64,000 nucleotides of DNA, from IMG/VR virus record IMGVR_UViG_3300043426_000266, positions 141,064-205,063 of that record; one strand, given 5' to 3'. The notes under the pieces are model-generated. The model was not told the origin of the DNA. It saw nothing but the letters and a program-made list of their open reading frames with translations, and ran no database searches. How positions within the stretch are numbered: the stretch's first letter is position 1; the number at the start of each line of letters is the position of its first letter. Below, piece after piece: positions 3,138 through 63,915 of this stretch. The position numbers and the translations under genes are program-made.

Positions 3138-3995
3138 ATGTCAACTTTAAATATTCAAATGTTAAACACCCTTCGAGTTATCGCAGAAGGGGAAACTATG
3201 GAAGAAGATAAGAGTTTATTACCAACCGACCTTTTCGATTTTCCAGAAACTTTCAACGACGTAGTTTCCGATATGTTGCAAGGTTCAGCAACCCCAGAGG
3301 AAATCCGTGATTTAATTAAATATGCAGTTATTATTGATACGAATATTCGTTATCGTTATAACCCGGAAGAAGTCGCAAAATTAGAGAATGAGTCAGGCAT
3401 CAATCCATCCGAATTTGCCAAGGTTTATGATTTGATTGATTCAAATTTTAAAGTCTCGGAAGGTCAGGCAGTTGCCGGGATTTTAGAAGGAACCTCTTCT
3501 TACATCTTGTGTGGTTTAGCGGGCGTAATTCGTCGCAATTATTCCGAACTGTACGACGATGGTTCTACCACGGCTTTCTATAATCTAATTGCGTTACATG
3601 CTAATCTCTCAGCATCTAACCCAAGTTCAACTGAATGCTGGTGGTTAGAAACACTATTCACAATGTATGGAAACGACGAATCAATTGAAAGCATAGAAGA
3701 CACTTTCTTTACTGACGAAGAAACAGTGAATCATGCAATTGAATTATGGTACATCTCATTCGTACAACCGCTTCAAAATTTCTGGGACAATATCGCCAAC
3801 GTTACAAACGAATATAACCCAAGTCATTTGGTTTCATTCCTATATTCGGATGTAGAAAATACACTTGCGGACTTGTATGAGGTTGGGTTACCTAAAGCCG
3901 AATCAGGTTATATTTCTCCGATCTCATCGATTAGTGTTAGTAAATCTGTAACCAATGTTGAACAGATGATGTTTGCGTTACTCACCAGTGAGTAA
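3138..3995 (+). CDS. Acidic hypothetical protein (285 aa)
   Basis: ORF track; rich in D/E/S; follows DHFR and is followed by a terminator. Confidence 0.7.
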   Translation: MSTLNIQMLNTLRVIAEGETMEEDKSLLPTDLFDFPETFNDVVSDMLQGSATPEEIRDLIKYAVIIDTNIRYRYNPEEVAKLENESGINPSEFAKVYDLIDSNFKVSEGQAVAGILEGTSSYILCGLAGVIRRNYSELYDDGSTTAFYNLIALHANLSASNPSSTECWWLETLFTMYGNDESIESIEDTFFTDEETVNHAIELWYISFVQPLQNFWDNIANVTNEYNPSHLVSFLYSDVENTLADLYEVGLPKAESGYISPISSISVSKSVTNVEQMMFALLTSE

Positions 3996-4002
3996 GCGAC
4001 CT

Positions 4003-4031
4003 AAATAAGAAGGGGTAACCCCTTCTTATTT
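4003..4031 (+). terminator. Intrinsic terminator
   Basis: AAATAAGAAGGGG-TAA-CCCCTTCTTATTT followed by a T-run. Confidence 0.8.
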
Positions 4032-4043
4032 TTTTAGGATTTT

Positions 4044-4049
4044 TATGAG
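4044..4049 (+). promoter_or_regulatory. Candidate late (nvRNAP) promoter TATGAG; also at 13501, 46379, 61269 and 63850
   Basis: TATG is the established phiKZ late-promoter core. Here TATGAG recurs in intergenic gaps shortly upstream of start codons, mostly just after a terminator. Confidence 0.5.
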
Positions 4050-4077
4050 TTTCCCCATTCTATAGTGAGAAAATAAA

Positions 4078-4881
4078 ATGAGTGCAGATGCTGCTACGAA
4101 GATTGATATTGCGCCATTAACAATTGTTGTTTCAGAAGCGCTCGACCCTCGTGTACGTCGTAAGTTAGAGGCAGAACAACAGGCAGATGTAAAGACCTAT
4201 AAAGAATTAACCCGTTCTTTAGAAACTCAAGAAGATTTAAATAAAATCAGACAAGAAGTGGAGGATCAAGGAGATGAAGCAGACCCATTCAAAACTCCAG
4301 AACCAACGGAATCAGAGCCAGCAGAAGCAGAAGCCCAACCCCAACAGCCGACCCCTGCTGAAAACCCAACGCCTGCTGCGGAACAAACTGCTGAACCTGC
4401 AACAACGCCGGCTACTACAGAAGTGCCAGCCGACACAGCAGCTCCAGCGGAGACTCCAGCGGCTACTGGACAAGATCAAGGTGCTGATGAGGATCTTAGT
4501 TCAGCGTTTGAAGGATTTGGCGTAAATTTACCGCGCAATCTTCTTCGTAAAATTGTAAAAGATTACATTAAGATGGAATCAAGTGACATTGACTCGATCG
4601 GTGAATTGGAGCACATTAAGTCATTTGTTTACATCGACTTAAGTCAGAATAAAGTAGATGGTGATACGCTTGAATCAGTTCAAACACTACGTGATCCAGA
4701 AAACACAATTGTGGTTATCAATGAAGAATCGATCCCTGATGCTGATACCACAATTCGTGCCCGCCGTATCGCAGAACAATTGTCTAACCGTGGTGTGAAA
4801 ATCTTCTATGATTTAGAAGAAGCAACAAACTATTTAAATGAACTTTACGATATCGTCTCTGGACGTAAAAAGGATGCTTAA
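4078..4881 (+). CDS. Hypothetical protein with a P/A/E/T-rich linker and a C-terminal alpha/beta (Rossmann-like) domain
   Basis: 267-aa ORF with a low-complexity centre. SLE, MES and TLES motifs could be head-protease sites. The ending RGVKIFYDLEEATNYLNEL resembles nucleoside-deoxyribosyltransferase-like domains (weak). Confidence 0.6.
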   Translation: MSADAATKIDIAPLTIVVSEALDPRVRRKLEAEQQADVKTYKELTRSLETQEDLNKIRQEVEDQGDEADPFKTPEPTESEPAEAEAQPQQPTPAENPTPAAEQTAEPATTPATTEVPADTAAPAETPAATGQDQGADEDLSSAFEGFGVNLPRNLLRKIVKDYIKMESSDIDSIGELEHIKSFVYIDLSQNKVDGDTLESVQTLRDPENTIVVINEESIPDADTTIRARRIAEQLSNRGVKIFYDLEEATNYLNELYDIVSGRKKDA

Positions 4882-6032
4882 TGATAAACTATAAAAGTTT
4901 AGTTGCCGATGTTTTAAATAACGGCAAAATGGTAAACACAGGCAAAGGTAGAACAAAACGTTTAATAGGTGCAATGGTTCGCTATGATATCGGTAATAAA
5001 CTTCCCGTTGTTACCGGTAAAAAAACAAACATCAATTGGGCTTTGATTGAAACCGCAATGTTTCTTAAAGGTGAGCACCATACTGATTTCTTAAAACAAT
5101 ATGGCGCGGAAAAGATTTGGGAAAAACAAGCTTTAAGTGAAGACTTTAAAGTTAAACATCCGATTCCACCCGCTGATGTTATTGCTAAACTGGTTGAATT
5201 AAAAGGTATAACTACCGAAGAAGCTGCCGCTGAGTTTGAAGGTTTAGCTATTGCGTACCAAGAACAACTTGTGAATATCGGCAAAGAATTTCAAGCAAAG
5301 GAAGGTGAAGAAGTTAATGAAGCTGGTTATAAAGAAGCAATTGAAAAACACACAATTGCTTTTGAAACCACTTTAACGGATCTAGGTCTTGAGATTTATT
5401 CAGAAAAGGTCATTTACTCAAAAGGTGAAATGGGTCCTACCTATGGCGCACAATGGGTGAAATGGTTGGGTGTAAATCCAACTGATAATCGTCTAGTGTA
5501 TATTGACCAAATCAAAGAAATTCTTTGGAAATTGGAAAACATCCCAGACTCTCGTCAGATTATTTTATCAGCCTGGAATCCTGCGGTAATTGCTCGAGAA
5601 ACAATTCCGTATGATGCTAAAATTAAAGCGGGTTACATGGGGCAGCCACCATGCCATCTTGTAACTCAATTCTTAGCAGATTTGAATGAAGATGGTACTC
5701 GTACATTAAACGCGGTATTATTTATTCGCTCGAATGACTTAGCTTTAGGCCACCCATTCAATATCATTGGTTACGCGGCGATCCTTCACCTTATTGCTGC
5801 TAAGTTTAACTGGAAGGTAGGTGAGTTGGTTGTTCAAATTGGTGATGCTCATATCTATGAAAATCATCTAGAGGGAATGAAGACTTATCTTTATGATCGT
5901 CCGATTCATGAAACCCCGACATTCAAACTCGCAGAAGGAGTAACGATTGATAACTTCACAGTTGAAGATCTCTTAACTGCGGTTGGTGAATACAAACACG
6001 AGGCGTACATGCCTTTTGAAATTAACGTTTAA
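4881..6032 (+). CDS. thyA: Thymidylate synthase (ThyA type) with an insertion of about 95 aa
   Basis: MGPTYGAQW, SRQIILSAWNP, catalytic PPCH, RSND-x-x-LG-x-PFN-x-x-x-Y, GDAHIYENH. Confidence 0.97.
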   Translation: MINYKSLVADVLNNGKMVNTGKGRTKRLIGAMVRYDIGNKLPVVTGKKTNINWALIETAMFLKGEHHTDFLKQYGAEKIWEKQALSEDFKVKHPIPPADVIAKLVELKGITTEEAAAEFEGLAIAYQEQLVNIGKEFQAKEGEEVNEAGYKEAIEKHTIAFETTLTDLGLEIYSEKVIYSKGEMGPTYGAQWVKWLGVNPTDNRLVYIDQIKEILWKLENIPDSRQIILSAWNPAVIARETIPYDAKIKAGYMGQPPCHLVTQFLADLNEDGTRTLNAVLFIRSNDLALGHPFNIIGYAAILHLIAAKFNWKVGELVVQIGDAHIYENHLEGMKTYLYDRPIHETPTFKLAEGVTIDNFTVEDLLTAVGEYKHEAYMPFEINV

Positions 6033-37986: not shown

Positions 37987-39267
37987 TTACGTCAAATGAA
38001 TTTTAGGATTGAATTCAGCAATTTTAAATGAACGACCATGCATTGCTTTCATGGCGTTGTTCATGATAATGGATCCAGGAAGAGAGGTTTCGATATGCAC
38101 CATTTCTCTTGAAGTAAAGAAGAAAGTATCTGTGCAGTGACCACAGAAGTTCGGTGGCTTCGTTTTACATCTCGCTGGAGTTCGTACGGTAATCGTTTTA
38201 TTGATTAATGATTTTGCCAACTCCGGAGTAATCTCGTTGGTTTTACCTGACACAGGATCAACGGTATATCGACCATAATAACGCTTCATATTATCTTGAG
38301 TCAATAAAACATTTACACCAGTCTTTACCCCACAGTCATCTTCTGAAATCTTTGAGTTCATGAAGATACGATATAGATAGTTTACTAGTTCACCGCCCTG
38401 CGCGGTTAAATGTCCACGAGAGTATGACGCTGCGCGAGTTGTATCGGCATTCGCTGGGATATTTTTAACGTCCATCCCGTCAGATAGTGGTTTGGTAATG
38501 ATCGCGGGTTTACCCCCGCCGAGACCATCGTCTAACCCGTACATTACGTGTGCTTTTTTTCTAGAATTTTCAAAAGACTTATCTGAAACAAAGAAGTCCT
38601 CCGCAACATCCCCCTTGAAAGAGTTCTTATCCATTGCAACAAGTTCTTTTTCAATTTCAGCAATCACCACGGTATTATCAAGTTCCGCTGCGTGCTTCTT
38701 CAACAACTCATCCCGACGGATTTCTACTGATTTATCAATAGACATTGTTTTGGCAGAACCAGTTGGAGTCGACACTGCCCATAACCCATTGAGCATGTTT
38801 AGACATTCACACCAGTAGTAGAATTCTGCAGCAGTGATTCTTTTCTCTTTAATGAACTGCTCAACAACTGAATTAATATCAGATGGTTTAAGTTTTTTGT
38901 TTAGATAAGGAGCTTTATCCCCAAATGCAGCAATAAGACAAATTAAATTACCTAGGATTGTTCCACCCGTACTCATTGTTACTTCGTGGATGTTTGGTAA
39001 ATCCCCAGGGTTTAAAGTATAAGTGGTTTTATAATCAATAATACTTTCTAATGGTTTAACTCCGTCTATCTTTTCAAACGCATTTGTTTCGGAGTTCCAA
39101 AACATGTGCTGGCCAGTATCACGGTCAATGGCGATATCAAAACCAATCCAGTCACGTATCTCATCACTGAAGGGGTGGGTAGCAACAGTAAAGACGCACA
39201 GCAACCAACGGGTCTCTTTATATCGATTTGCTTTCACACCACCTAAGAAAAAATTAAAACGATCCAT
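37987..39267 (-). CDS. Virion RNA polymerase beta-prime C-terminal subunit (phiKZ gp80-like)
   Basis: T-x-x-GGE-x-x-x-x-L-x-R, EDDCG, RTP-x-x-C...C-x-x-C, MKAMHG. Confidence 0.9.
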   Translation of the reverse strand: MDRFNFFLGGVKANRYKETRWLLCVFTVATHPFSDEIRDWIGFDIAIDRDTGQHMFWNSETNAFEKIDGVKPLESIIDYKTTYTLNPGDLPNIHEVTMSTGGTILGNLICLIAAFGDKAPYLNKKLKPSDINSVVEQFIKEKRITAAEFYYWCECLNMLNGLWAVSTPTGSAKTMSIDKSVEIRRDELLKKHAAELDNTVVIAEIEKELVAMDKNSFKGDVAEDFFVSDKSFENSRKKAHVMYGLDDGLGGGKPAIITKPLSDGMDVKNIPANADTTRAASYSRGHLTAQGGELVNYLYRIFMNSKISEDDCGVKTGVNVLLTQDNMKRYYGRYTVDPVSGKTNEITPELAKSLINKTITVRTPARCKTKPPNFCGHCTDTFFFTSREMVHIETSLPGSIIMNNAMKAMHGRSFKIAEFNPKIHLT

Positions 39268-40148: not shown

Positions 40149-40721
40149 ATGAACATAAACGTTGGAAATTACAAAATGCAATGTCTTGAAAAACTGCACC
40201 TACTCGATGGAAAACCATTTGAAGTTGTTCGTCAAGAAGCAATTGATGAATATAACAATACGGGCGGTAAACCATTATCGGAAACGGATAAAGAAAACCT
40301 GCGCAAAAGTTACATTAAACAAAAGAAAACCAAAACGGATTATCGGCTCTACCCACTCTATCAATCGATTAAAGAAATTGAGCTGCATTGTACCCCCACC
40401 ATGAGCGAGTTACTTGTTCAGGATGAAGATGGTGCTTGGACTCAAACAGAGGTATATACACTTCTAGCGAGTTTAAAACCTGAAAATGCTGAGTTGCTTA
40501 AACAAATGGAAGTTCTTTGGATTCCATCTGTTGGTAAAGCAGACCAGCTCAAACGAACTTGGATTAAAGAAAAAGTTATTCAAACTCGATTCTCTCGCCG
40601 AGGACAGGAGTTTGTCGAAAAGCTTCAAGCGTTGGTTGATGATTTATTTTCACTCTCAACTTTATGTATCAATGTGCAACTACTACTCAACGATTTAACA
40701 AAGGAAGTAACTGATGTCTAA
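40149..40721 (+). CDS. Hypothetical protein (190 aa)
   Basis: ORF track; overlaps the start of the next gene. Confidence 0.6.
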   Translation: MNINVGNYKMQCLEKLHLLDGKPFEVVRQEAIDEYNNTGGKPLSETDKENLRKSYIKQKKTKTDYRLYPLYQSIKEIELHCTPTMSELLVQDEDGAWTQTEVYTLLASLKPENAELLKQMEVLWIPSVGKADQLKRTWIKEKVIQTRFSRRGQEFVEKLQALVDDLFSLSTLCINVQLLLNDLTKEVTDV

Positions 40722-43017
40722 TCTTTCAATTATTATTTCCCCATTGGCGGATGCTGAAAAAGTAAAAACCGAATTGCAAGAACTGTTAGTTGGTAAATCA
40801 GTAGTGATCTCTGATGACCCATTTGCAATTGGTGATGTCGTCATTACTCAATATTTCTCTGACTTGTCAAAACATTTATCGGGTCATGTTTTAGATACAC
40901 TCCTAGAGCGTAAAGATTTATTGGTACAAACACACACCCAGGTAAGTGTAGGTGAACATATTGGTTCGTTGATGAATGATGAGAACTCAGACACAGCAGC
41001 AATATCTAGAATTTCAACCAATGCGTTTTCAGCAATTGCGTTTGCAAATCAAATTGCAAAACTAAATGAAAAGTTTATTATCACAACATCAGTTGATCAT
41101 AGTTTTGGTGAAGAGATGGCATTTTCTGATTGGTTGAACCGCCAACCGCAAGTTCAAGAGACTGTGACCACAGAAGTTAAGATTGAGCCAGAGGCGCCTG
41201 CTGCTGAAGTTGCTACTTCTGCAGAAACAGTCGTACCTGCGGTAGTGGAAACAGATCCAGTCCCTGTTGACGATAAGACTGAAATCGCCGGTGATGGTCT
41301 TGGATCAACCGATACCGCCCCTGTGGTTGATGAAGCGTTTTTAGACCCACTTTCAAATGTGATCAGCGCAACGACTGACCCCCAACCAATTGTCTTGGAA
41401 GAAATTTCCGTCAATGAGGTCTCTGAAACTGATACTTCAACTGCTGTAGAGGAAGCTGCTCCTCTGGTCGAACTAAACTCTGATATGGATTCCTTTGATC
41501 CGTTAGCACAAGCATTCGCAACTTCTTCTCAATTAGCAAACGAGGAGGAACCCAAACCAGAGCCTGATTTAGATGCGTCAATTTACATCGGTCGTTTACC
41601 AGACTATCCAAAAGTCGAAACAACAGTTGAAATTTTAAAACACCCATTGGTGAAAAAAGCTAAAGACGAACCATCAAGTGAAGCAATGTTTTACGACTGG
41701 GGTGGTGACGTGGATTCGCTTACATCTGAGTTAGAAAGACTTGATCGAATGTCTGAGGAAGCAACTCAACGTAAACGTCGCCCCAACTTCACAGAACAAG
41801 ACATGCAGACGCTGGCATGTATGAGTGATCGAATTGGGTCTAGAGACATAATGAACCGAATGTTTACACCCCAGTCTAAATGGTCACAAGCGCTTCGCAC
41901 AGAGACAAAAGCAATTCCGCTACTCACTGTAGTTAAAAACCCAAACTATGGCGATCAGCGCTATGTGGGTACTGATGCAGTACCGTTGCTTGCTAACCGT
42001 ATGAAAATTGGTGTAACAATTGGTGTAATGCTACCACATACTGGTATTTACGTTTTAATTGTTTCACCAGGAGATGATGAAGTATTAAACACGCTGTCCA
42101 TCATCAATGCACAACGTGTTGAAACCCTACGCTCTTCTTCTGGGATCTTATTAGGTAATAGTAATTACTATCTAAATAAACAAATCATTGACTTGTTCTT
42201 AAATAGCGTAACAGATTGTTCTTTAACCGCACATAATCGTGAAATGCTGCAAAAGCTAATTGATGATCGTGATGTTGATATTATCGCTGCTGCGCTGTAT
42301 GCATCTATCTATCCAGATGGCTACGACTATACACAGGTTTGCGGGTTAGAACTTGCCAATCATCCAGGTAAAATTTGCCCGGGTAGTCAAGAGTTTGTTG
42401 CTGATTTAAAACGTATGGTGTTTGTAGACAATTCACGTTTAAATGAATATCAACGTAACATCGCAACAGCTGGATTAACCAAACGTTCAGTTAAAGAAAT
42501 TGAAGACTATCAAAGTCAACATTATCTTGGTTGGGAAAAACCATACGAGATTACTGAAGGTGTTCAATTCATTTATAAACCAGTGTCTTCTTTGGTTGCA
42601 ATTGAAGCAGGTGAAAAATGGATTAGTGAAATCTCTAGCGTCGTTGACCGTTTGATTGCGTTTAAACAAGATGAAACTGAACGGAATGTGATGATCAACC
42701 AACGAATCGATATTACGCGTATTCGTGAGTTTAGTCATTGGGTATCTGAGATTCATGTTGACGGGTTGATTCTTAAAGACCGTGATAAAATTGATCAGTT
42801 GTTAAATAAACTGAGTCGTAATCCAGAGGTTGTGAACAAAGTAGGTGAAACCCTATCCGAGTTCCAACGTTTATCTGTTATTGCAATGGTGGCTATTCCA
42901 CGCGTGGAATGTCCGACTTGTTCTCAGACTGATCAGAAGGATTTAGATATTAGCCCTTATTTAATTCCACAAGATGCAGTCTCTCGTTTTTTTACCCTCG
43001 CCCACCAAAGATTCTAA
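40714..43017 (+). CDS. Large CxxC protein, probable tail/baseplate-hub assembly chaperone (T4 gp26-like C-terminal domain), with a long acidic linker
   Basis: AAGGA SD; C...C pair plus CPTC; ends SRFFTL. The functional call is inference. Confidence 0.55.
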   Translation: MSNLSIIISPLADAEKVKTELQELLVGKSVVISDDPFAIGDVVITQYFSDLSKHLSGHVLDTLLERKDLLVQTHTQVSVGEHIGSLMNDENSDTAAISRISTNAFSAIAFANQIAKLNEKFIITTSVDHSFGEEMAFSDWLNRQPQVQETVTTEVKIEPEAPAAEVATSAETVVPAVVETDPVPVDDKTEIAGDGLGSTDTAPVVDEAFLDPLSNVISATTDPQPIVLEEISVNEVSETDTSTAVEEAAPLVELNSDMDSFDPLAQAFATSSQLANEEEPKPEPDLDASIYIGRLPDYPKVETTVEILKHPLVKKAKDEPSSEAMFYDWGGDVDSLTSELERLDRMSEEATQRKRRPNFTEQDMQTLACMSDRIGSRDIMNRMFTPQSKWSQALRTETKAIPLLTVVKNPNYGDQRYVGTDAVPLLANRMKIGVTIGVMLPHTGIYVLIVSPGDDEVLNTLSIINAQRVETLRSSSGILLGNSNYYLNKQIIDLFLNSVTDCSLTAHNREMLQKLIDDRDVDIIAAALYASIYPDGYDYTQVCGLELANHPGKICPGSQEFVADLKRMVFVDNSRLNEYQRNIATAGLTKRSVKEIEDYQSQHYLGWEKPYEITEGVQFIYKPVSSLVAIEAGEKWISEISSVVDRLIAFKQDETERNVMINQRIDITRIREFSHWVSEIHVDGLILKDRDKIDQLLNKLSRNPEVVNKVGETLSEFQRLSVIAMVAIPRVECPTCSQTDQKDLDISPYLIPQDAVSRFFTLAHQRF
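42987..42993 (+). promoter_or_regulatory. Candidate -1 ribosomal frameshift heptamer T TTT TTT
   Basis: In-frame X XXY YYZ within CGT TTT TTT ACC; the -1 frame is open into ORF 43116..43511. Confidence 0.6.
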
Positions 43018-43511
43018 TTGGTAACGAAGAGTTCAATCGAACTCTTCCGCCTGATGGCCAGCATGTTTTACATATCGAGTATGGTACGAGTGAGCCTGAA
43101 GTTATTCCTCGTATCATGGTCGCTGCTGATGAGTTTAGGTTAGGGCTTGGTGTAAGTACAATTAATGGTTTCGAACGAGCAGCGATAAGACAGGATGTCT
43201 ATGATCAAGTGTTTTTAAAGGAATCCGATCACCCTTATTCAACGATTCGCATGAGTAATAAAGAGCGGTATTCTTCAACCCATTTGTGGTATAGTCGTAT
43301 GGCAGAGTTTATGCTTTATAACGCCGCTGAGAAAACGGGGTTATCATTCGTAGAGTTTGTTAAAATGCCAACATGGTTTGTTGAAAATACACTCTCGACA
43401 CTTAGACAACAAAGTAAAGACACGAGACAGGGCGCTGCAAGTCTTCAAAAAGACATTGAGAAGATGGGTGATGCTGCTGTTGAAAACTTTTCCAACATGA
43501 AAAAACGGTAG
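42993..43511 (+). CDS. -1-frame ORF (172 codons from the slip site; 131 aa from the ATG at 43116), probable C-terminal module of a frameshift fusion (GT/gp51-like)
   Basis: No stop from 42954 to 43509, no ATG/GTG/TTG before 43116, and no obvious SD at 43116. TGLSFVEFVKMP-x-W resembles the chaperone GT/gp51 motif. Confidence 0.65.
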   Translation, partial: YPRPPKILIGNEEFNRTLPPDGQHVLHIEYGTSEPEVIPRIMVAADEFRLGLGVSTINGFERAAIRQDVYDQVFLKESDHPYSTIRMSNKERYSSTHLWYSRMAEFMLYNAAEKTGLSFVEFVKMPTWFVENTLSTLRQQSKDTRQGAASLQKDIEKMGDAAVENFSNMKKR

Positions 43512-43531
43512 GGTAATTACCCTACCGTTTT
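43502..43531. terminator. 30-bp perfect palindrome terminator
   Basis: AAAACGGTAGGGTAATTACCCTACCGTTTT. Confidence 0.85.
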
Positions 43532-43611
43532 ATGGATTAAAATATTTTTAGATATATTATTTAAGAGCTATCTGAATATATTGCAAGCCTGAAAAATAAT
43601 AGTCTATCGCA

Positions 43612-43815
43612 TAAATAAAGAAGGGGCAATTGCCCCTTCTTTAAGTATATTTAGTTAACGCATTAACCCCGGAGAGACCAGCCTCTCCGGGGTTAAATGT
43701 CTGACCTTTCTGGAGTTGGGTCAGAGGGGGTAGTGCCCATTCTACACTTACCCTTTATGATAAACTTAACATTCATGAGACTTTCTCATGAATCAATCGG
43801 TGTTAAGTTTATCAC
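43612..43815 (-). ncRNA. Candidate structured non-coding RNA (strand tentative)
   Basis: Four adjacent hairpins in a 450-bp gap with no ORF of 60 aa or more. A minus-strand TATG ends at the foot of the longest hairpin, with a palindromic terminator at 43616-43643. Confidence 0.35.
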
Positions 43816-43931
43816 ATACTAATAGAAAAAAATTGTATTTAAAGATATGTATGCAGCTTACGATTATTTCATAAGACAATCTTTGAACCAGTCAAATTTG
43901 AACTCTTTGAGTTTACAATCCTGAAAAAATA

Positions 43932-43949
43932 AAGGGGCAATTGCCCCTT
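43932..43949. terminator. Palindromic terminator downstream of the DNA polymerase exonuclease gene
   Basis: AAGGGGCAATTGCCCCTT, same core as at 30091 and 43623. Confidence 0.75.
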
Positions 43950-43960
43950 CTACTTTTTTG

Positions 43961-45691
43961 TCAATTAACGGTTATTTCCTGATACATCTTAGCGGGTAGT
44001 TTGTGCGCGGCAGCAAAGTCTTTATGAAGATCTTGTAATGTTTTTAATTTGTACAAGTCTCGACACGTCGTAATTGCATTTGCATACCCCCCGGTCAGAT
44101 TCACACAAACATAACGGTGTTGGAATGAATCAATCCCTTGTATCTTACATATCTCAAATACCGTGTTTCTTCGACACAACCCCAGCAAGATACCGATCTT
44201 AGGATAAGCTGATATCAAATCCAGGTCGTAGTTATGAATCGTTGTTCTAGATTTTAAGAACGTTTTATCATCTTTAACTAATTGGATTCCTATATCTTCA
44301 AGATGAGTCGCCTCTAGAATATTAATCCAAAGTTCCTTACCAATAACCATCTTGTCAATCTCTTCCTTCATTCGATCAGAAGTTGTAGACATAACCTGGT
44401 CATTCTCTAGGCAGAAAGTATGCAAGGCATCACATAGTTTTCTAGGGTTAGAGTTAAAGTCTTTAATTTGAGAATTACCCAACAACAAAGGTAACTTGGT
44501 GCTGATGTCTTTAAACTTCTCATCGAACTCCTCTACGCGAATACAGTCAATCAAACCATAAGCACAGTATTCCTTTTTAAAGTGTTTCTGCATCACCATG
44601 TGCCATCTCCCAGTACCCGTAGGGATGCCTTTTAATAACTCATGTTCTACGTGATATTTACCTTGACCCAGATACTTCGTTGTTAAGTAGTCTAATGAAT
44701 AAGAAGGCTCTGCTTTCATTTTACGAAGACCGCGAAATAAGGAAGCAGGGTCAATAAAGTAAAATGGTGAAGTGGAATATACTGTATGCCATTGTTCCGA
44801 TACTGCCAGGGGTCTAGAAGTACCATCATCTTTACGTTTCACTAATGGTCCTCGTTTGAATTCAAAATGTTTGAATTCAGGAGGAACAGAGGAATGAGAG
44901 AAAATGTCTTTAGGATCAACATTAGCATCCCTGAGGATATCTAATATTACACTCATATCGTAGTTGATGTTCCAAAAACCAATAACGTCAGGCATCCATT
45001 CATTGGCTTTCTCGTACATCTTTTTAATTCCATCAACCATATTGTTAACGAAATCTAATTCTAGTTTAATCTTTCTATCTTTTATTTCTGGCAACTCATC
45101 TTCAATAAACTTACGATATTCTTCAGCAGTGTCTCCAGGATTAACCCACTTGTTTAAAACAACCTGATAAGCTTTGTCTTTAAAACTCATGCTAAAGATA
45201 ATCATCCCAAGATTACCATTCATGTCAAATTCAGTATCTTGAACCGCGACAGTTAAACGGCTACGGGTACTGCGTTTGAATTTCTTTTCGTATTGAAGCT
45301 TAACAACAGAGTTAATGTCAATATCACAACCGTATACAAACGGGCTACGAAAGCACTCTGCTAATCGCATTTGCGGGGTGTAGGGTTTACTAAGTTTGTA
45401 CTGGACTTGACGAATCAGGTCACGTTGAGTTGTTTTGTAATTGATTAAGTTCTGTAGGTATTCTGTCTCTAATTTGTATTGATGTTTTTGATGCGCTTTT
45501 TTTGTAATCCAAAAATCACGTTTAACGTTCTCATGGAACACATACTCAGGGGTACACCCGTCAGTACCATCTGCGTTTTTAACAAAACGATTACGTTTAA
45601 CAAATACAGCGTCCCCCTCATGGGATTTATTATTAATTGCGTAGCATGAATGAATATATTCAAATTCAGGATTATTAACATCGGTACTCAT
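43961..45691 (-). CDS. Split family-B DNA polymerase, 3'-5' exonuclease plus motif A subunit (phiKZ gp82-like)
   Basis: ExoI D-x-E (QDTEFD), ExoII WNINYD, YSLD, ExoIII Y-x-x-x-D (YGLID), motif A DLDLISAYP. GGAGG SD favours the start at 45691. Confidence 0.92.
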   Translation of the reverse strand: MSTDVNNPEFEYIHSCYAINNKSHEGDAVFVKRNRFVKNADGTDGCTPEYVFHENVKRDFWITKKAHQKHQYKLETEYLQNLINYKTTQRDLIRQVQYKLSKPYTPQMRLAECFRSPFVYGCDIDINSVVKLQYEKKFKRSTRSRLTVAVQDTEFDMNGNLGMIIFSMSFKDKAYQVVLNKWVNPGDTAEEYRKFIEDELPEIKDRKIKLELDFVNNMVDGIKKMYEKANEWMPDVIGFWNINYDMSVILDILRDANVDPKDIFSHSSVPPEFKHFEFKRGPLVKRKDDGTSRPLAVSEQWHTVYSTSPFYFIDPASLFRGLRKMKAEPSYSLDYLTTKYLGQGKYHVEHELLKGIPTGTGRWHMVMQKHFKKEYCAYGLIDCIRVEEFDEKFKDISTKLPLLLGNSQIKDFNSNPRKLCDALHTFCLENDQVMSTTSDRMKEEIDKMVIGKELWINILEATHLEDIGIQLVKDDKTFLKSRTTIHNYDLDLISAYPKIGILLGLCRRNTVFEICKIQGIDSFQHRYVCVNLTGGYANAITTCRDLYKLKTLQDLHKDFAAAHKLPAKMYQEITVN

Positions 45692-45748
45692 TTTTGTATC
45701 CTCCAACCTTCACATATACTCAAACCTCGTTTTATTAAAAATAAAAAT

Positions 45749-46323: not shown

Positions 46324-46354
46324 CAAGGAGCTTCGGCTCCTTGTTTTTTTTTTT
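46324..46354 (+). terminator. Intrinsic terminator, cUUCGg loop plus long T-run
   Basis: CAAGGAGC-TTCG-GCTCCTTG followed by a long T-run. Confidence 0.9.
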
Positions 46355-46406
46355 GCACTCGTTGATATTCAATCATTTTATGAGTCAGGTTTTCATCGAG
46401 GTCGTC

Positions 46407-47684
46407 ATGGATTTATTTAAAGGAGCACTCTCTTTGGAGTCAGCTCAGTTCCTTGATACCGATTTTGCCGAGGAACTCTTAAACGAACTCCAGCGATTAA
46501 GAGACATTGGTGATTTTGGTCAAGCAGCAATGAAGAAATGTAAAGTGTCTGCAATTACAAAACTATATACAGACATTGATTTACAGTTTGTTATTTCAGA
46601 TCAAATTCAAAATAACGCATATTTTATTCTCCCGCACATGGATAAAAACCATCCATTCTTTAAACAGATGGGGTTATCCCCGGATTGGGCTTCTTCTTCA
46701 ACCACACTACAGTCTATTCGTGAAGCTGCAAGTAAGTCTAAAGATGCTGGGGTTGACTTGCGCACAGGACGTGTTAAAGGTTATTTTAAACAAGTAAAAG
46801 TAACCATCGTCATGTCGCATAATTTCTTTGTTGATAAGAAATGGAAAACCCAAGAAATTGCAGGCATCTTCGCACATGAGTTAGGTCATGCATTTACCTA
46901 CTTTGAATACTTCGGTAATATCGTCCGTCGCTCGATGTTAATCGACCAAGCATCTAAAACAGTGATGGATGCAAAGTATAACTCTGAAGAAAAGAAAAAG
47001 TTAATTACTGAGGTTGAAAAGCAGCTTGGAATCGAAACCTTAACCGCTGAGAAAACAATTAACTTAAATGGCATAAAAGGTAAACATAGCATTGAAGAAG
47101 TGCTTATTACTGACGATGTATTTAATCATTCCCGTACTGAGTCTTCAACCCCATTCTACGATGCTCGTAATGTAGAACAACTTGCTGATCAGTTCTGTGT
47201 GATTCACGGAATGGGCAAATGGCAAAGTGAAGCCTTGGCGAAACTATACAAACATTACCGTGATCCAGAGGCGGTGACTTCTCTTGAGTTCTTTGTGGTT
47301 GAGATTATTAAGTTAACATTATTTTTAGTTTTAACTTTCTACAACCCTTTCTTTACATTGATCTATGGGTTAACCTTTGTTCCGATGAGTCAAATCTACG
47401 ATAAACCTAAAGATCGTATTCTTTTCTTAAAACGACAAATGATCTCTAACCTGAAATCAACCAATGATAAATTTATCAAAGCAAAATTGGTTACTGATAT
47501 TCAGGCGATTGATGACCTACTTACTGAGTTTACAAAACGAAGCACTATTTTCGACTTCTATTGTAACTACTTGAACCCGGTAGGTCGTCGTATGTTTAAA
47601 GAAGAAACTTTCCGTAAAGGAATTGAGAATGCTTTAAACAATGATATTTTCTTAAAAGCTGCAGAATTGGAGATGATTAAATGA
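46407..47684 (+). CDS. Virion head protein with a zincin metallopeptidase motif
   Basis: FAHELGH (HExxH) plus EQLADQF; N-terminal SLE|S protease site; GAGGT SD gives the start at 46407. Confidence 0.7.
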   Translation: MDLFKGALSLESAQFLDTDFAEELLNELQRLRDIGDFGQAAMKKCKVSAITKLYTDIDLQFVISDQIQNNAYFILPHMDKNHPFFKQMGLSPDWASSSTTLQSIREAASKSKDAGVDLRTGRVKGYFKQVKVTIVMSHNFFVDKKWKTQEIAGIFAHELGHAFTYFEYFGNIVRRSMLIDQASKTVMDAKYNSEEKKKLITEVEKQLGIETLTAEKTINLNGIKGKHSIEEVLITDDVFNHSRTESSTPFYDARNVEQLADQFCVIHGMGKWQSEALAKLYKHYRDPEAVTSLEFFVVEIIKLTLFLVLTFYNPFFTLIYGLTFVPMSQIYDKPKDRILFLKRQMISNLKSTNDKFIKAKLVTDIQAIDDLLTEFTKRSTIFDFYCNYLNPVGRRMFKEETFRKGIENALNNDIFLKAAELEMIK

Positions 47685-63848: not shown

Positions 63849-63915
63849 TTATGAGCTCATTGTCTTACAAGACACCCCCCCCCCTAACTAAGATCTTAAA
63901 ATTGAGGGTTTTTAA

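Follow-up and report, generated by a model that had tools for sequence, protein, structure and literature searches.

A run of seven T's near the 3' end of a large phage gene very probably causes some ribosomes to slip back one base, thereby extending the encoded 767-aa protein with a further domain of 172 residues. We found the -1 frame to be open from the same site in 31 of 31 related loci, including that of the model phage phiKZ, and consider this a conserved recoding site, most likely operating by ribosomal -1 frameshifting (with a probability of roughly 0.8), although this rests on comparative evidence without direct evidence for either protein product. No published description was found in the literature searched, which did not cover subscription-only papers.

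Organization of the locus

The analyzed window is a stretch of 64,000 nucleotides from IMG/VR record IMGVR_UViG_3300043426_000266 (positions 141,064 to 205,063). A preliminary description, made from the sequence alone, proposed a programmed -1 frameshift at the T7 that fuses the 767-aa protein to the downstream ORF. All its sequence statements were confirmed and its central claim is supported. The 0-frame ORF ends with CGT TTT TTT ACC CTC GCC CAC CAA AGA TTC TAA, so that T_TTT_TTT lies in X_XXY_YYZ phase on two Phe codons and seven sense codons follow the second Phe. In the -1 frame, 41 codons (YPRPPK...IPRI) precede the ATG used by gene callers, and no earlier ATG, GTG or TTG exists. The features of the locus are listed in Table 1.

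Table 1. Features of the recoded locus and its neighbors in the window
Feature	Position	Strand	Characteristics
RNA polymerase beta subunit gene	37987-39267		Neighboring gene
0-frame ORF	40714-43017	+	767 aa, short product; orthologue of phiKZ gp77 / 201phi2-1 gp136 (phrog_4585)
Open -1 frame	42954-43511	+	Ends with TAG at 43509-43511
Slippery heptamer T_TTT_TTT	42987-42993	+	Proposed -1 shift site on the invariant FF motif
-1-frame extension	42993-43511	+	172 codons plus TAG; helical domain (phrog_12109 / phrog_7580); predicted long product 760+172 = 932 aa
Dual-coding overlap	42994-43017	+	0 frame TLAHQRF-stop, -1 frame YPRPPKIL
Hairpin	43026-43047	+	Perfect 9-bp stem, GAAGAGTTC/AATC/GAACTCTTC; 32 nt after the heptamer, 8 nt after the 0-frame stop
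Annotated ATG	43116-43118	+	Start of a 131-aa ORF; no clear Shine-Dalgarno sequence
Terminator-like palindrome	43502-43531	.	13 pairs; overlaps the stop of the extension ORF and marks the end of the transcription unit
DNA polymerase gene	43961-45706		Neighboring gene

Within this window alone the pattern is not beyond chance, since there are 8 runs of T7 or longer against about 10 expected, and three in-phase TTTTTTT heptamers occur in ORFs of at least 100 aa. The significance comes from comparison with relatives. A megablast of the locus against GenBank phages and tblastn with the extension both found nothing, as the family is too divergent, and relatives were therefore reached through the upstream protein, for which tblastn found 166 phage records. 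The 767-aa protein matches phrog_4585 with an E-value of 6e-68. Phage 201phi2-1 gp136 is annotated as similar to phiKZ gp77, and PHIKZ077 lies at the corresponding locus.

Conservation of the -1 frame

The 31 related loci have extensions that are 17-90% identical and include phiKZ gp77, 201phi2-1 gp136, Goslar, PCH45, RAY, and phages of Vibrio, Ralstonia and a Bacillus phage. In all 31 the -1 frame stays open for 153-179 codons from the FF motif, while the median is 12 open codons for the +1 frame and 13 for the 0 frame. The distance to the 0-frame stop (9-46 codons) and the position of the first start codon vary widely, so many indels have occurred and all have kept the frame. The extension aligns over its whole length across relatives only 11-24% identical to it. 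In many lineages -1-frame stops lie 2-6 codons upstream of the heptamer, which, combined with the nearest 0-frame stop, confines the shift to about 11 codons, where the T-run is the only shared repeat.

Gene callers annotate two ordinary adjacent genes in all records, and some lineages indeed have a start codon 10-28 codons after the site. We nevertheless consider it very unlikely that the downstream protein simply starts at its annotated ATG and that the T7 is a coincidence. This ATG is not conserved, as the aligned column reads M, M, M, M, K, F, C, C, C in close relatives. Among nine close relatives, the interval between the 0-frame stop and the ATG shows the same codon-position substitution pattern (0.43/0.31/0.59 for positions 1/2/3) as the region after the ATG (0.41/0.31/0.63), and an 80%-identical relative shows synonymous third-position changes there. 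In one alignment of the extension, His26, located upstream of the ATG, is invariant. The first ATG, GTG or TTG after the site is found at extension codon 105 in MadMel, 87 in phiKZ/SL2, 89 in AgentSmith and 87 in a further related locus (L033), and most of the domain can therefore not be made by independent initiation in these lineages.

Termination followed by reinitiation at a non-AUG codon in the -1 frame is likewise improbable. The two frames overlap by only a few codons in this clade, ATT codons lie at 43011 and 43017, and a hairpin follows the stop. However, conservation of the -1 frame begins at the T-run, before the 0-frame stop: among close relatives, the A/V and H/R/L changes in the 0 frame are synonymous in the -1 frame, where YPRPP is invariant. 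In PCH45, FBKp24 and Moabite the 0-frame stop lies 39-46 codons after the site while the FFYP junction is kept, and no conserved restart codon is present.

No fused single-ORF version was found among the 166 upstream-protein representatives or the best 150 of 1243 extension-domain representatives. The latter are all 85-191 aa long, with starts scattered over profile positions 1-93. The two longest family members were inspected as possible natural fusions, but one simply has a longer N-terminus and the other runs into the +1 frame. Homopolymers are error-prone, and Xanthomonas phage RTH11 has a T-run one base shorter than its sister phage LucasX, its ORF running into the +1 frame. A miscounted homopolymer hiding a T8 and a single 932-aa ORF is highly unlikely here, however, since eight contigs carry the identical 767-aa ORF, relatives 54-90% identical from different samples all need the same shift, and six phiKZ-like isolates all have T7. 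The one-base length differences among phiKZ-like genomes fall in a poly-A tract after the extension stop and not in the T-run. The 0-frame tail FFxLxxQ+ is itself conserved, so both products appear to be under selection.

Slippery site and proposed mechanism

Twenty-five of the 31 loci have an in-phase T_TTT_TTN heptamer with T-runs of 6-8, and the wobble base of the preceding codon is T although the encoded residue varies (R, I, V, T, L, G, Y). The remaining six have weakened sites, specifically A_TTT_TTT, A_TTT_TTC and, in one clade of four, A_CTT_TTT with only T5, where the mechanism would have to be single-tRNA slippage on U_UUU. In the proposed mechanism most ribosomes read through CGU UUU UUU ACC and terminate nine codons later, while a minority slip back one base when the two tRNA-Phe occupy U_UUU_UUU, then read UAC CCU CGC and continue for 172 codons. 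The last seven residues of the short form are thus replaced by a Pro-rich linker (YPRPP) and a helical domain.

That the shift is ribosomal is an inference. Transcriptional slippage, in which the phage or host RNA polymerase adds one extra U in a fraction of transcripts, would give the same long protein, and comparative sequence data cannot fully separate the two mechanisms. Most lineages have T7 or T8, and these phages use unusual split multisubunit RNA polymerases, one of which is encoded next door. We consider this alternative unlikely, because the three Vibrio phages have exactly the minimal T_TTT_TTC with only T6 and two clades have only T5, which is probably too short for appreciable polymerase slippage, and because the run always keeps its X_XXY_YYZ phase with T at the preceding wobble position, which polymerase slippage does not need.

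No conserved stimulator was found. The preliminary description pointed to the 9-bp hairpin downstream of the heptamer, but RNAalifold and per-sequence folding showed no consensus structure among nine close relatives and no consistent fold or z-score among 30 loci. The hairpin is kept only in the closest relatives, without covariation, and is too far from the heptamer for a classical stimulator; it probably does not stimulate frameshifting. An Rfam scan of 42700-43700 found nothing above threshold, and no upstream Shine-Dalgarno-like element was found. The shift is thus inferred to be inefficient (a few per cent). Against the proposed mechanism, U_UUU_UUU and U_UUU_UUA are much less shift-prone than A_AAA_AAG in E. 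coli (PMC5009743).

Relation to known systems and implications

The upstream protein has a conserved C-terminal domain (about residues 365-767) with four conserved Cys and a terminal helix ending in SRFFTLAHQRF. Its AF2 model (pLDDT 84, pTM 0.84) matches BFVD models named baseplate hub subunit or hub assembly protein with probability 1.00, E-values of 2e-5 to 6e-4 and target-normalised TM-scores of 0.45-0.59. The gp26-gp51-like pair suggested in the preliminary description is only half right, as the resemblance to the T4 gp26/gp51 family (PF12322) is uncertain and concerns the upstream domain and its predicted fold only. There is no PF12322 hit for the window protein (E up to 0.1) or for 18 relatives (E up to 1), whereas T4 gp26 and gp51 themselves score 216 and 178 bits, and hhalign of the family profile against T4 gp26 and gp51 was negative. 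The extension is an unrelated helical domain with no known match. Pfam gave no significant hit for either part (best match a sub-threshold Transposase_29 at E 0.02), the PHROG families are of unknown function, and PDB sequence searches with the family profile and with the Goslar and phiKZ-like orthologues, as well as PDB fold searches for both AF2 models, were negative. Neither phiKZ gp77 nor the Goslar orthologue (taking its gp number from its locus tag) is named in the published virion structures and neither matches any solved chain, which would fit an assembly factor. T4 gene 26 also gives two products (26 and 26'), but by internal initiation, and T4 gp26 and gp51 are paralogues on opposite strands rather than an upstream/downstream recoded pair.

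The tail assembly chaperone frameshifts of dsDNA phages, which appear to use G_GGA_AAG in lambda G/GT and T_TTT_TTG in P2 E/E+E' (Xu, Hendrix & Duda, 2004), share with the present case a -1 shift near the 3' end of a phage gene with a morphogenesis-type role (here only suggested by fold), a minor C-terminally extended product, a downstream ORF lacking its own start and the absence of a strong stimulator, and in both cases conservation across a whole phage group is the main evidence. The present gene is not a G/GT-type tail chaperone by position, since it does not lie between the tail tube and tape-measure genes but next to RNA polymerase and DNA polymerase genes, a synteny that also holds in relatives. 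The protein family differs as well, without a tail-chaperone Pfam or fold match, and the upstream protein is large (about 480-850 aa rather than roughly 100-150 aa). E. coli dnaX tau/gamma and IS-element OrfAB likewise involve -1 slippage on a homopolymeric X_XXY_YYZ heptamer that sets a fixed ratio of two proteins. However, dnaX and many IS elements use A_AAA_AAG with an upstream Shine-Dalgarno-like element and a 3' hairpin 5-9 nt away, while the site described here is U-rich, and in dnaX the shifted product is the shorter one. By the logic of lambda G/GT, the two forms are inferred to act together in baseplate-hub assembly at a fixed ratio, a role for which the predicted fold is the only link.

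Programmed frameshifting is a well-known device in phage morphogenesis, but this instance appears to have been missed since phiKZ was sequenced. In phiKZ the extension shows up only as a 218-nt ‘gap’ plus an 80-aa remnant ORF, PHIKZ076.4. Recognizing it would correct the annotation of a gene that recurs across these phages, define a second protein product of about 650-930 aa and give a clean genetic handle for studying how these phages assemble, through a synonymous ‘no-slip’ and a one-base ‘always-long’ version. Relatives with T8, T7, T6 and T5 sites form a graded series that offers a natural test of U-run slippage without stimulators. It is somewhat more likely than not that phiKZ-like jumbo phages share an obligatory, unannotated -1 recoding event in a conserved gp26/gp51-like gene, which every lineage sampled keeps and none replaces with a fusion or a separate gene. 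If that holds, the ratio of short to long form is an essential, tunable parameter of virion (baseplate hub) assembly, and the at least 1243 representative clusters found with the extension profile would make this one of the most widespread recoded phage gene families outside the tail chaperones.

The locus and its relatives

The sequence of the locus is as given in the preliminary description. The 767-aa ORF ends in a stretch in which the last base of a CGT codon and the two following Phe codons form T_TTT_TTT in X_XXY_YYZ phase, and the -1 frame is open across this site. After a -1 slip the reading would be FF-YPRPPKILIGNEEFNRTLPPDGQHVLHIEYGTSEPEVIPRI-M..., which adds 41 codons before the only start codon in that frame, an ATG without an evident Shine-Dalgarno sequence. 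The reported hairpin is exact. Taken alone this arrangement is not remarkable, since the window (38% G+C) contains eight runs of T7 or longer against about ten expected, and three in-phase TTTTTTT heptamers in long ORFs. The features of the locus and of the related loci are listed in the table.

Coordinates of features in the window and in related phage genomes.
Sequence	Feature	Position	Remark
Window	Upstream 190-aa ORF	40149-40721	
Window	Overlap of the 190-aa and 767-aa ORFs	40714-40721	8 nt
Window	767-aa ORF	40714-43017	ends in TAA
Window	N-terminal half of the 767-aa protein	40714-41800	residues about 150-330 form a low-complexity linker
Window	Open -1 frame	42954 to the TAG at 43509-43511	
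Window	Run of seven T's	42987-42993	
Window	9-bp hairpin	43026-43047	
Window	Start codon in the -1 frame	43116	ATG
Window	Terminator-like hairpin	43502-43531	
Window	G+C-rich palindrome	43616-43643 and 43931-43950	AAGGGGCAATTGCCCCTT core
Window	ORF with a listed TTG start	46341-47684	
Window	T11 run	46344-46354	at the very start of ORF 46341-47684
Window	C10 run	63875-63884	near the end of the window
phiKZ, NC_004629 (L040)	Locus	71442-71945	minus strand
phiKZ, NC_004629 (L040)	T7 run	71939-71945	
Erwinia phage MadMel (L002)	Annotated overlap of gp269 and gp270	4476-4611	136 nt
T4 (L039)	Genes 26, 26' and 51	3803-5229	

The window comes from a 205-kb IMG/VR contig and has no close relative among GenBank phages. 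The 767-aa protein matches phrog_4585 (E 6e-68) and, by tblastn, a conserved protein of 166 jumbo phages at about 25% identity. These relatives include phiKZ gp77 and 201phi2-1 gp136, Goslar, PCH45, RAY/MadMel, RSF1, Psa21, several Vibrio phages and Bacillus phage AgentSmith. The neighborhood is conserved and consists of a split RNA polymerase beta subunit and a hypothetical gene on the other strand, followed by a small gene, the gene studied here and a small downstream ORF. The 190-aa ORF overlaps the start of the 767-aa ORF, and the same tight junction is seen in relatives, at the position of phiKZ gp78, which suggests translational coupling. The low-complexity linker of the 767-aa protein is long, acidic and Pro/Glu/Val/Thr-rich. 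It is absent from most orthologues (500-560 aa) and is the reason why the proteins of the window's clade (731-845 aa) are longer. The G+C-rich palindrome occurs twice in the 450-nt intergenic region between the extension ORF and the DNA polymerase gene, with a third terminator-like hairpin nearby, and may be a repeated terminator element.

Comparative analysis of the -1 frame

We collected 31 loci (window included), of which 17 are GenBank phages, five are IMG/VR contigs and nine are metagenomic relatives that are 54-90% identical and were reached through the protein search. In the distant set, the extensions are 11-24% identical to that of the window. In every one of the 31 loci the -1 frame is open from the homologous FF motif to the end of the downstream ORF, for 153-179 codons, while from the same point the +1 frame is open for a median of 12 codons and the 0 frame for a median of 13. 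The distance to the 0-frame stop varies from 9 to 46 codons, and the first start codon in the -1 frame lies anywhere from codon 10 to codon 105. Many indels have therefore occurred, and all preserved the frame relation. Twenty-five of the 31 loci carry T_TTT_TTN in phase, with T-runs of 6 to 8. The base before the first Phe codon is T in CGT, ATT, GTT, ACT, CTT, GGT and TAT, i.e., the residue varies but the nucleotide does not. FF is invariant in the distant set.

The extension behaves as a coding sequence that cannot start on its own, which argues against two ordinary adjacent genes, the arrangement produced by gene callers. The -1-frame peptides align over their full length. In alignment A5, His26 is invariant, and a [DN]G.HV...FG motif lies upstream of the window's ATG. 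Among nine close relatives, the column of this ATG reads M, M, M, M, K, F, C, C, C. Pairwise differences per codon position are 0.43/0.31/0.59 between the 0-frame stop and the ATG and 0.41/0.31/0.63 downstream of the ATG, which is essentially the same. Inside the overlap of both frames YPRPP is invariant, whereas the corresponding 0-frame residues change (A/V, H/R/L) through substitutions that are synonymous in the -1 frame. In addition, an 80%-identical relative shows CCG>CCT, GAT>GAC, GGC>GGT, AAC>AAT and GAG>GAA in the 41-codon stretch, all silent in the -1 frame.

The first ATG, GTG or TTG after the site is found at extension codon 105 in MadMel, 87 in phiKZ and SL2, 89 in AgentSmith and 87 in locus L033. 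In MadMel, the annotated start of gp269 lies 78 nt upstream of the slip site inside gp270 because the -1 frame is open there, which gives the annotated overlap. In phiKZ, PHIKZ077 (533 aa) is followed by an unannotated ‘gap’ of 218 nt and then by an 80-aa remnant call, PHIKZ076.4, both in the open -1 frame, with a predicted long product of 687 aa. A profile of the extension finds 1243 representative clusters at E up to 0.001. The best 150 are all 85-191 aa, and their starts are scattered over profile positions 1-93, which is what gene callers produce when they take the first available start in an ORF that has no real one.

An assembly error is unlikely to explain the arrangement. Eight contigs carry the identical 767-aa protein, and relatives from unrelated samples need the same shift. 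Six near-identical phiKZ-like isolates (L014, L040-L044) all have T7, and their differences of one or two bases lie in a poly-A tract immediately 3' of the extension ORF. In the homologue of Xanthomonas phage RTH11 (627 aa), the called protein continues after ‘...GTIF’ for about 75 residues in the +1 frame of its sister phage LucasX, and its T-run is therefore one base shorter (T7 against T8), which represents either a homopolymer miscall or real length variation at the slip site. Elsewhere in the window, the T11 and C10 runs are long homopolymers that could affect start assignment or be error-prone.

Position and mechanism of the proposed shift

The -1-frame stops lie only 2-6 codons upstream of the heptamer in PCH45, phiKZ, FBKp24, Moabite, the Vibrio phages and AgentSmith, and the nearest 0-frame stop is nine codons downstream (in the clade of the window). 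Aligned on FF, the shift must therefore fall within about 11 codons, and the T-run is the only shared repetitive element there.

We favor ribosomal -1 slippage of the two tRNA-Phe on U_UUU_UUN, since both the phase and the preceding wobble T are conserved. Three Vibrio phages have just the minimal T6 heptamer and two clades have only T5, which is too short for polymerase slippage, although transcriptional slippage at T7-T8 cannot be excluded without RNA data. No conserved stimulator was found. Per-sequence folds of the 90 nt downstream give no consistent structure, RNAalifold on nine close relatives gives no consensus pairs, and no Rfam element is present. The 9-bp hairpin, noted in the preliminary description as following the slip site, recurs only in the nearest relatives of the window, without covariation, and begins 32 nt after the heptamer and 8 nt after the 0-frame stop. 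U-rich heptamers are much less shift-prone than A_AAA_AAG in E. coli (PMC5009743). We therefore expect a low efficiency, like that of lambda G/GT.

Six loci have weakened sites, specifically A_TTT_TTT in Psa21, A_TTT_TTC in PS119XW and A_CTT_TTT in a clade of four close relatives. All six keep the open, conserved -1 frame but would need single-tRNA slippage on U_UUU. That motif class is used by a frameshift predictor trained on annotated phage cases (the ‘five’ motif) (PMC10885494). This step is the least secure.

Predicted domains and the two products

The extension is predicted as a helical domain of moderate confidence (pLDDT 65), with no PDB match and no named family. The upstream domain is confidently predicted (pLDDT 84, pTM 0.84) and contains four conserved cysteines (C...C and CPxC), which we infer to be a zinc site. 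It has no PDB fold match. In BFVD, after its own orthologues, it matches models named ‘baseplate hub subunit’ or ‘baseplate hub assembly protein, T4-like’ with probability 1.00, E 2e-5 to 6e-4 and target-normalized TM 0.45-0.59. T4 gp26 and gp51 both match that family, PF12322, strongly, and are thus paralogues, transcribed divergently. gp51, not only gp26, carries a CxxC motif. However, the phage protein matches neither the HMM nor, by hhalign, the T4 sequences, and we therefore call it gp26/gp51-like by predicted fold only, whereas the preliminary description had proposed a gp26-gp51-like pair.

Several points fit an assembly factor rather than a virion component. The phiKZ structural atlas does not mention gp77, and the Goslar virion preprint does not mention gp81 or gp82 (taking the gp number from the locus tag). 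PDB holds no chain matching the Goslar or phiKZ-like orthologue. The 201phi2-1 record marks the neighboring gp138, but not gp135 or gp136, as found by virion mass spectrometry. The idea that the two forms cooperate in hub assembly at a fixed ratio is an inference by analogy.

The closest known systems in logic are the tail-assembly-chaperone frameshifts (lambda G/GT, P2 E/E+E'), but the gene is not a member of that family by position, sequence or fold, contrary to the tail-chaperone analogy of the preliminary description. Full-text searches, which did not cover subscription-only literature, found no report of a frameshift in this gene or in Chimalliviridae. It is not mentioned in the papers we checked, including the core-genome paper, two virion-structure papers, a frameshift-predictor paper and the 2016 recoding review, and none of the 17 GenBank records annotates a joined CDS here. 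The mechanism is ordinary, while this instance appears previously unrecognized, is very widespread and is present in a model phage.

Both products appear to matter. The 0-frame tail FFxLxxQ(R/K) is conserved and forms the end of the last helix of the predicted upstream domain. No fused single-ORF version was found among 166 cluster representatives of the upstream protein, of which the two longest were checked and are not fusions, and none of the best 150 extension-domain hits is long either. The arrangement is thus maintained rather than resolved, as expected if a ratio of short to long form is selected.
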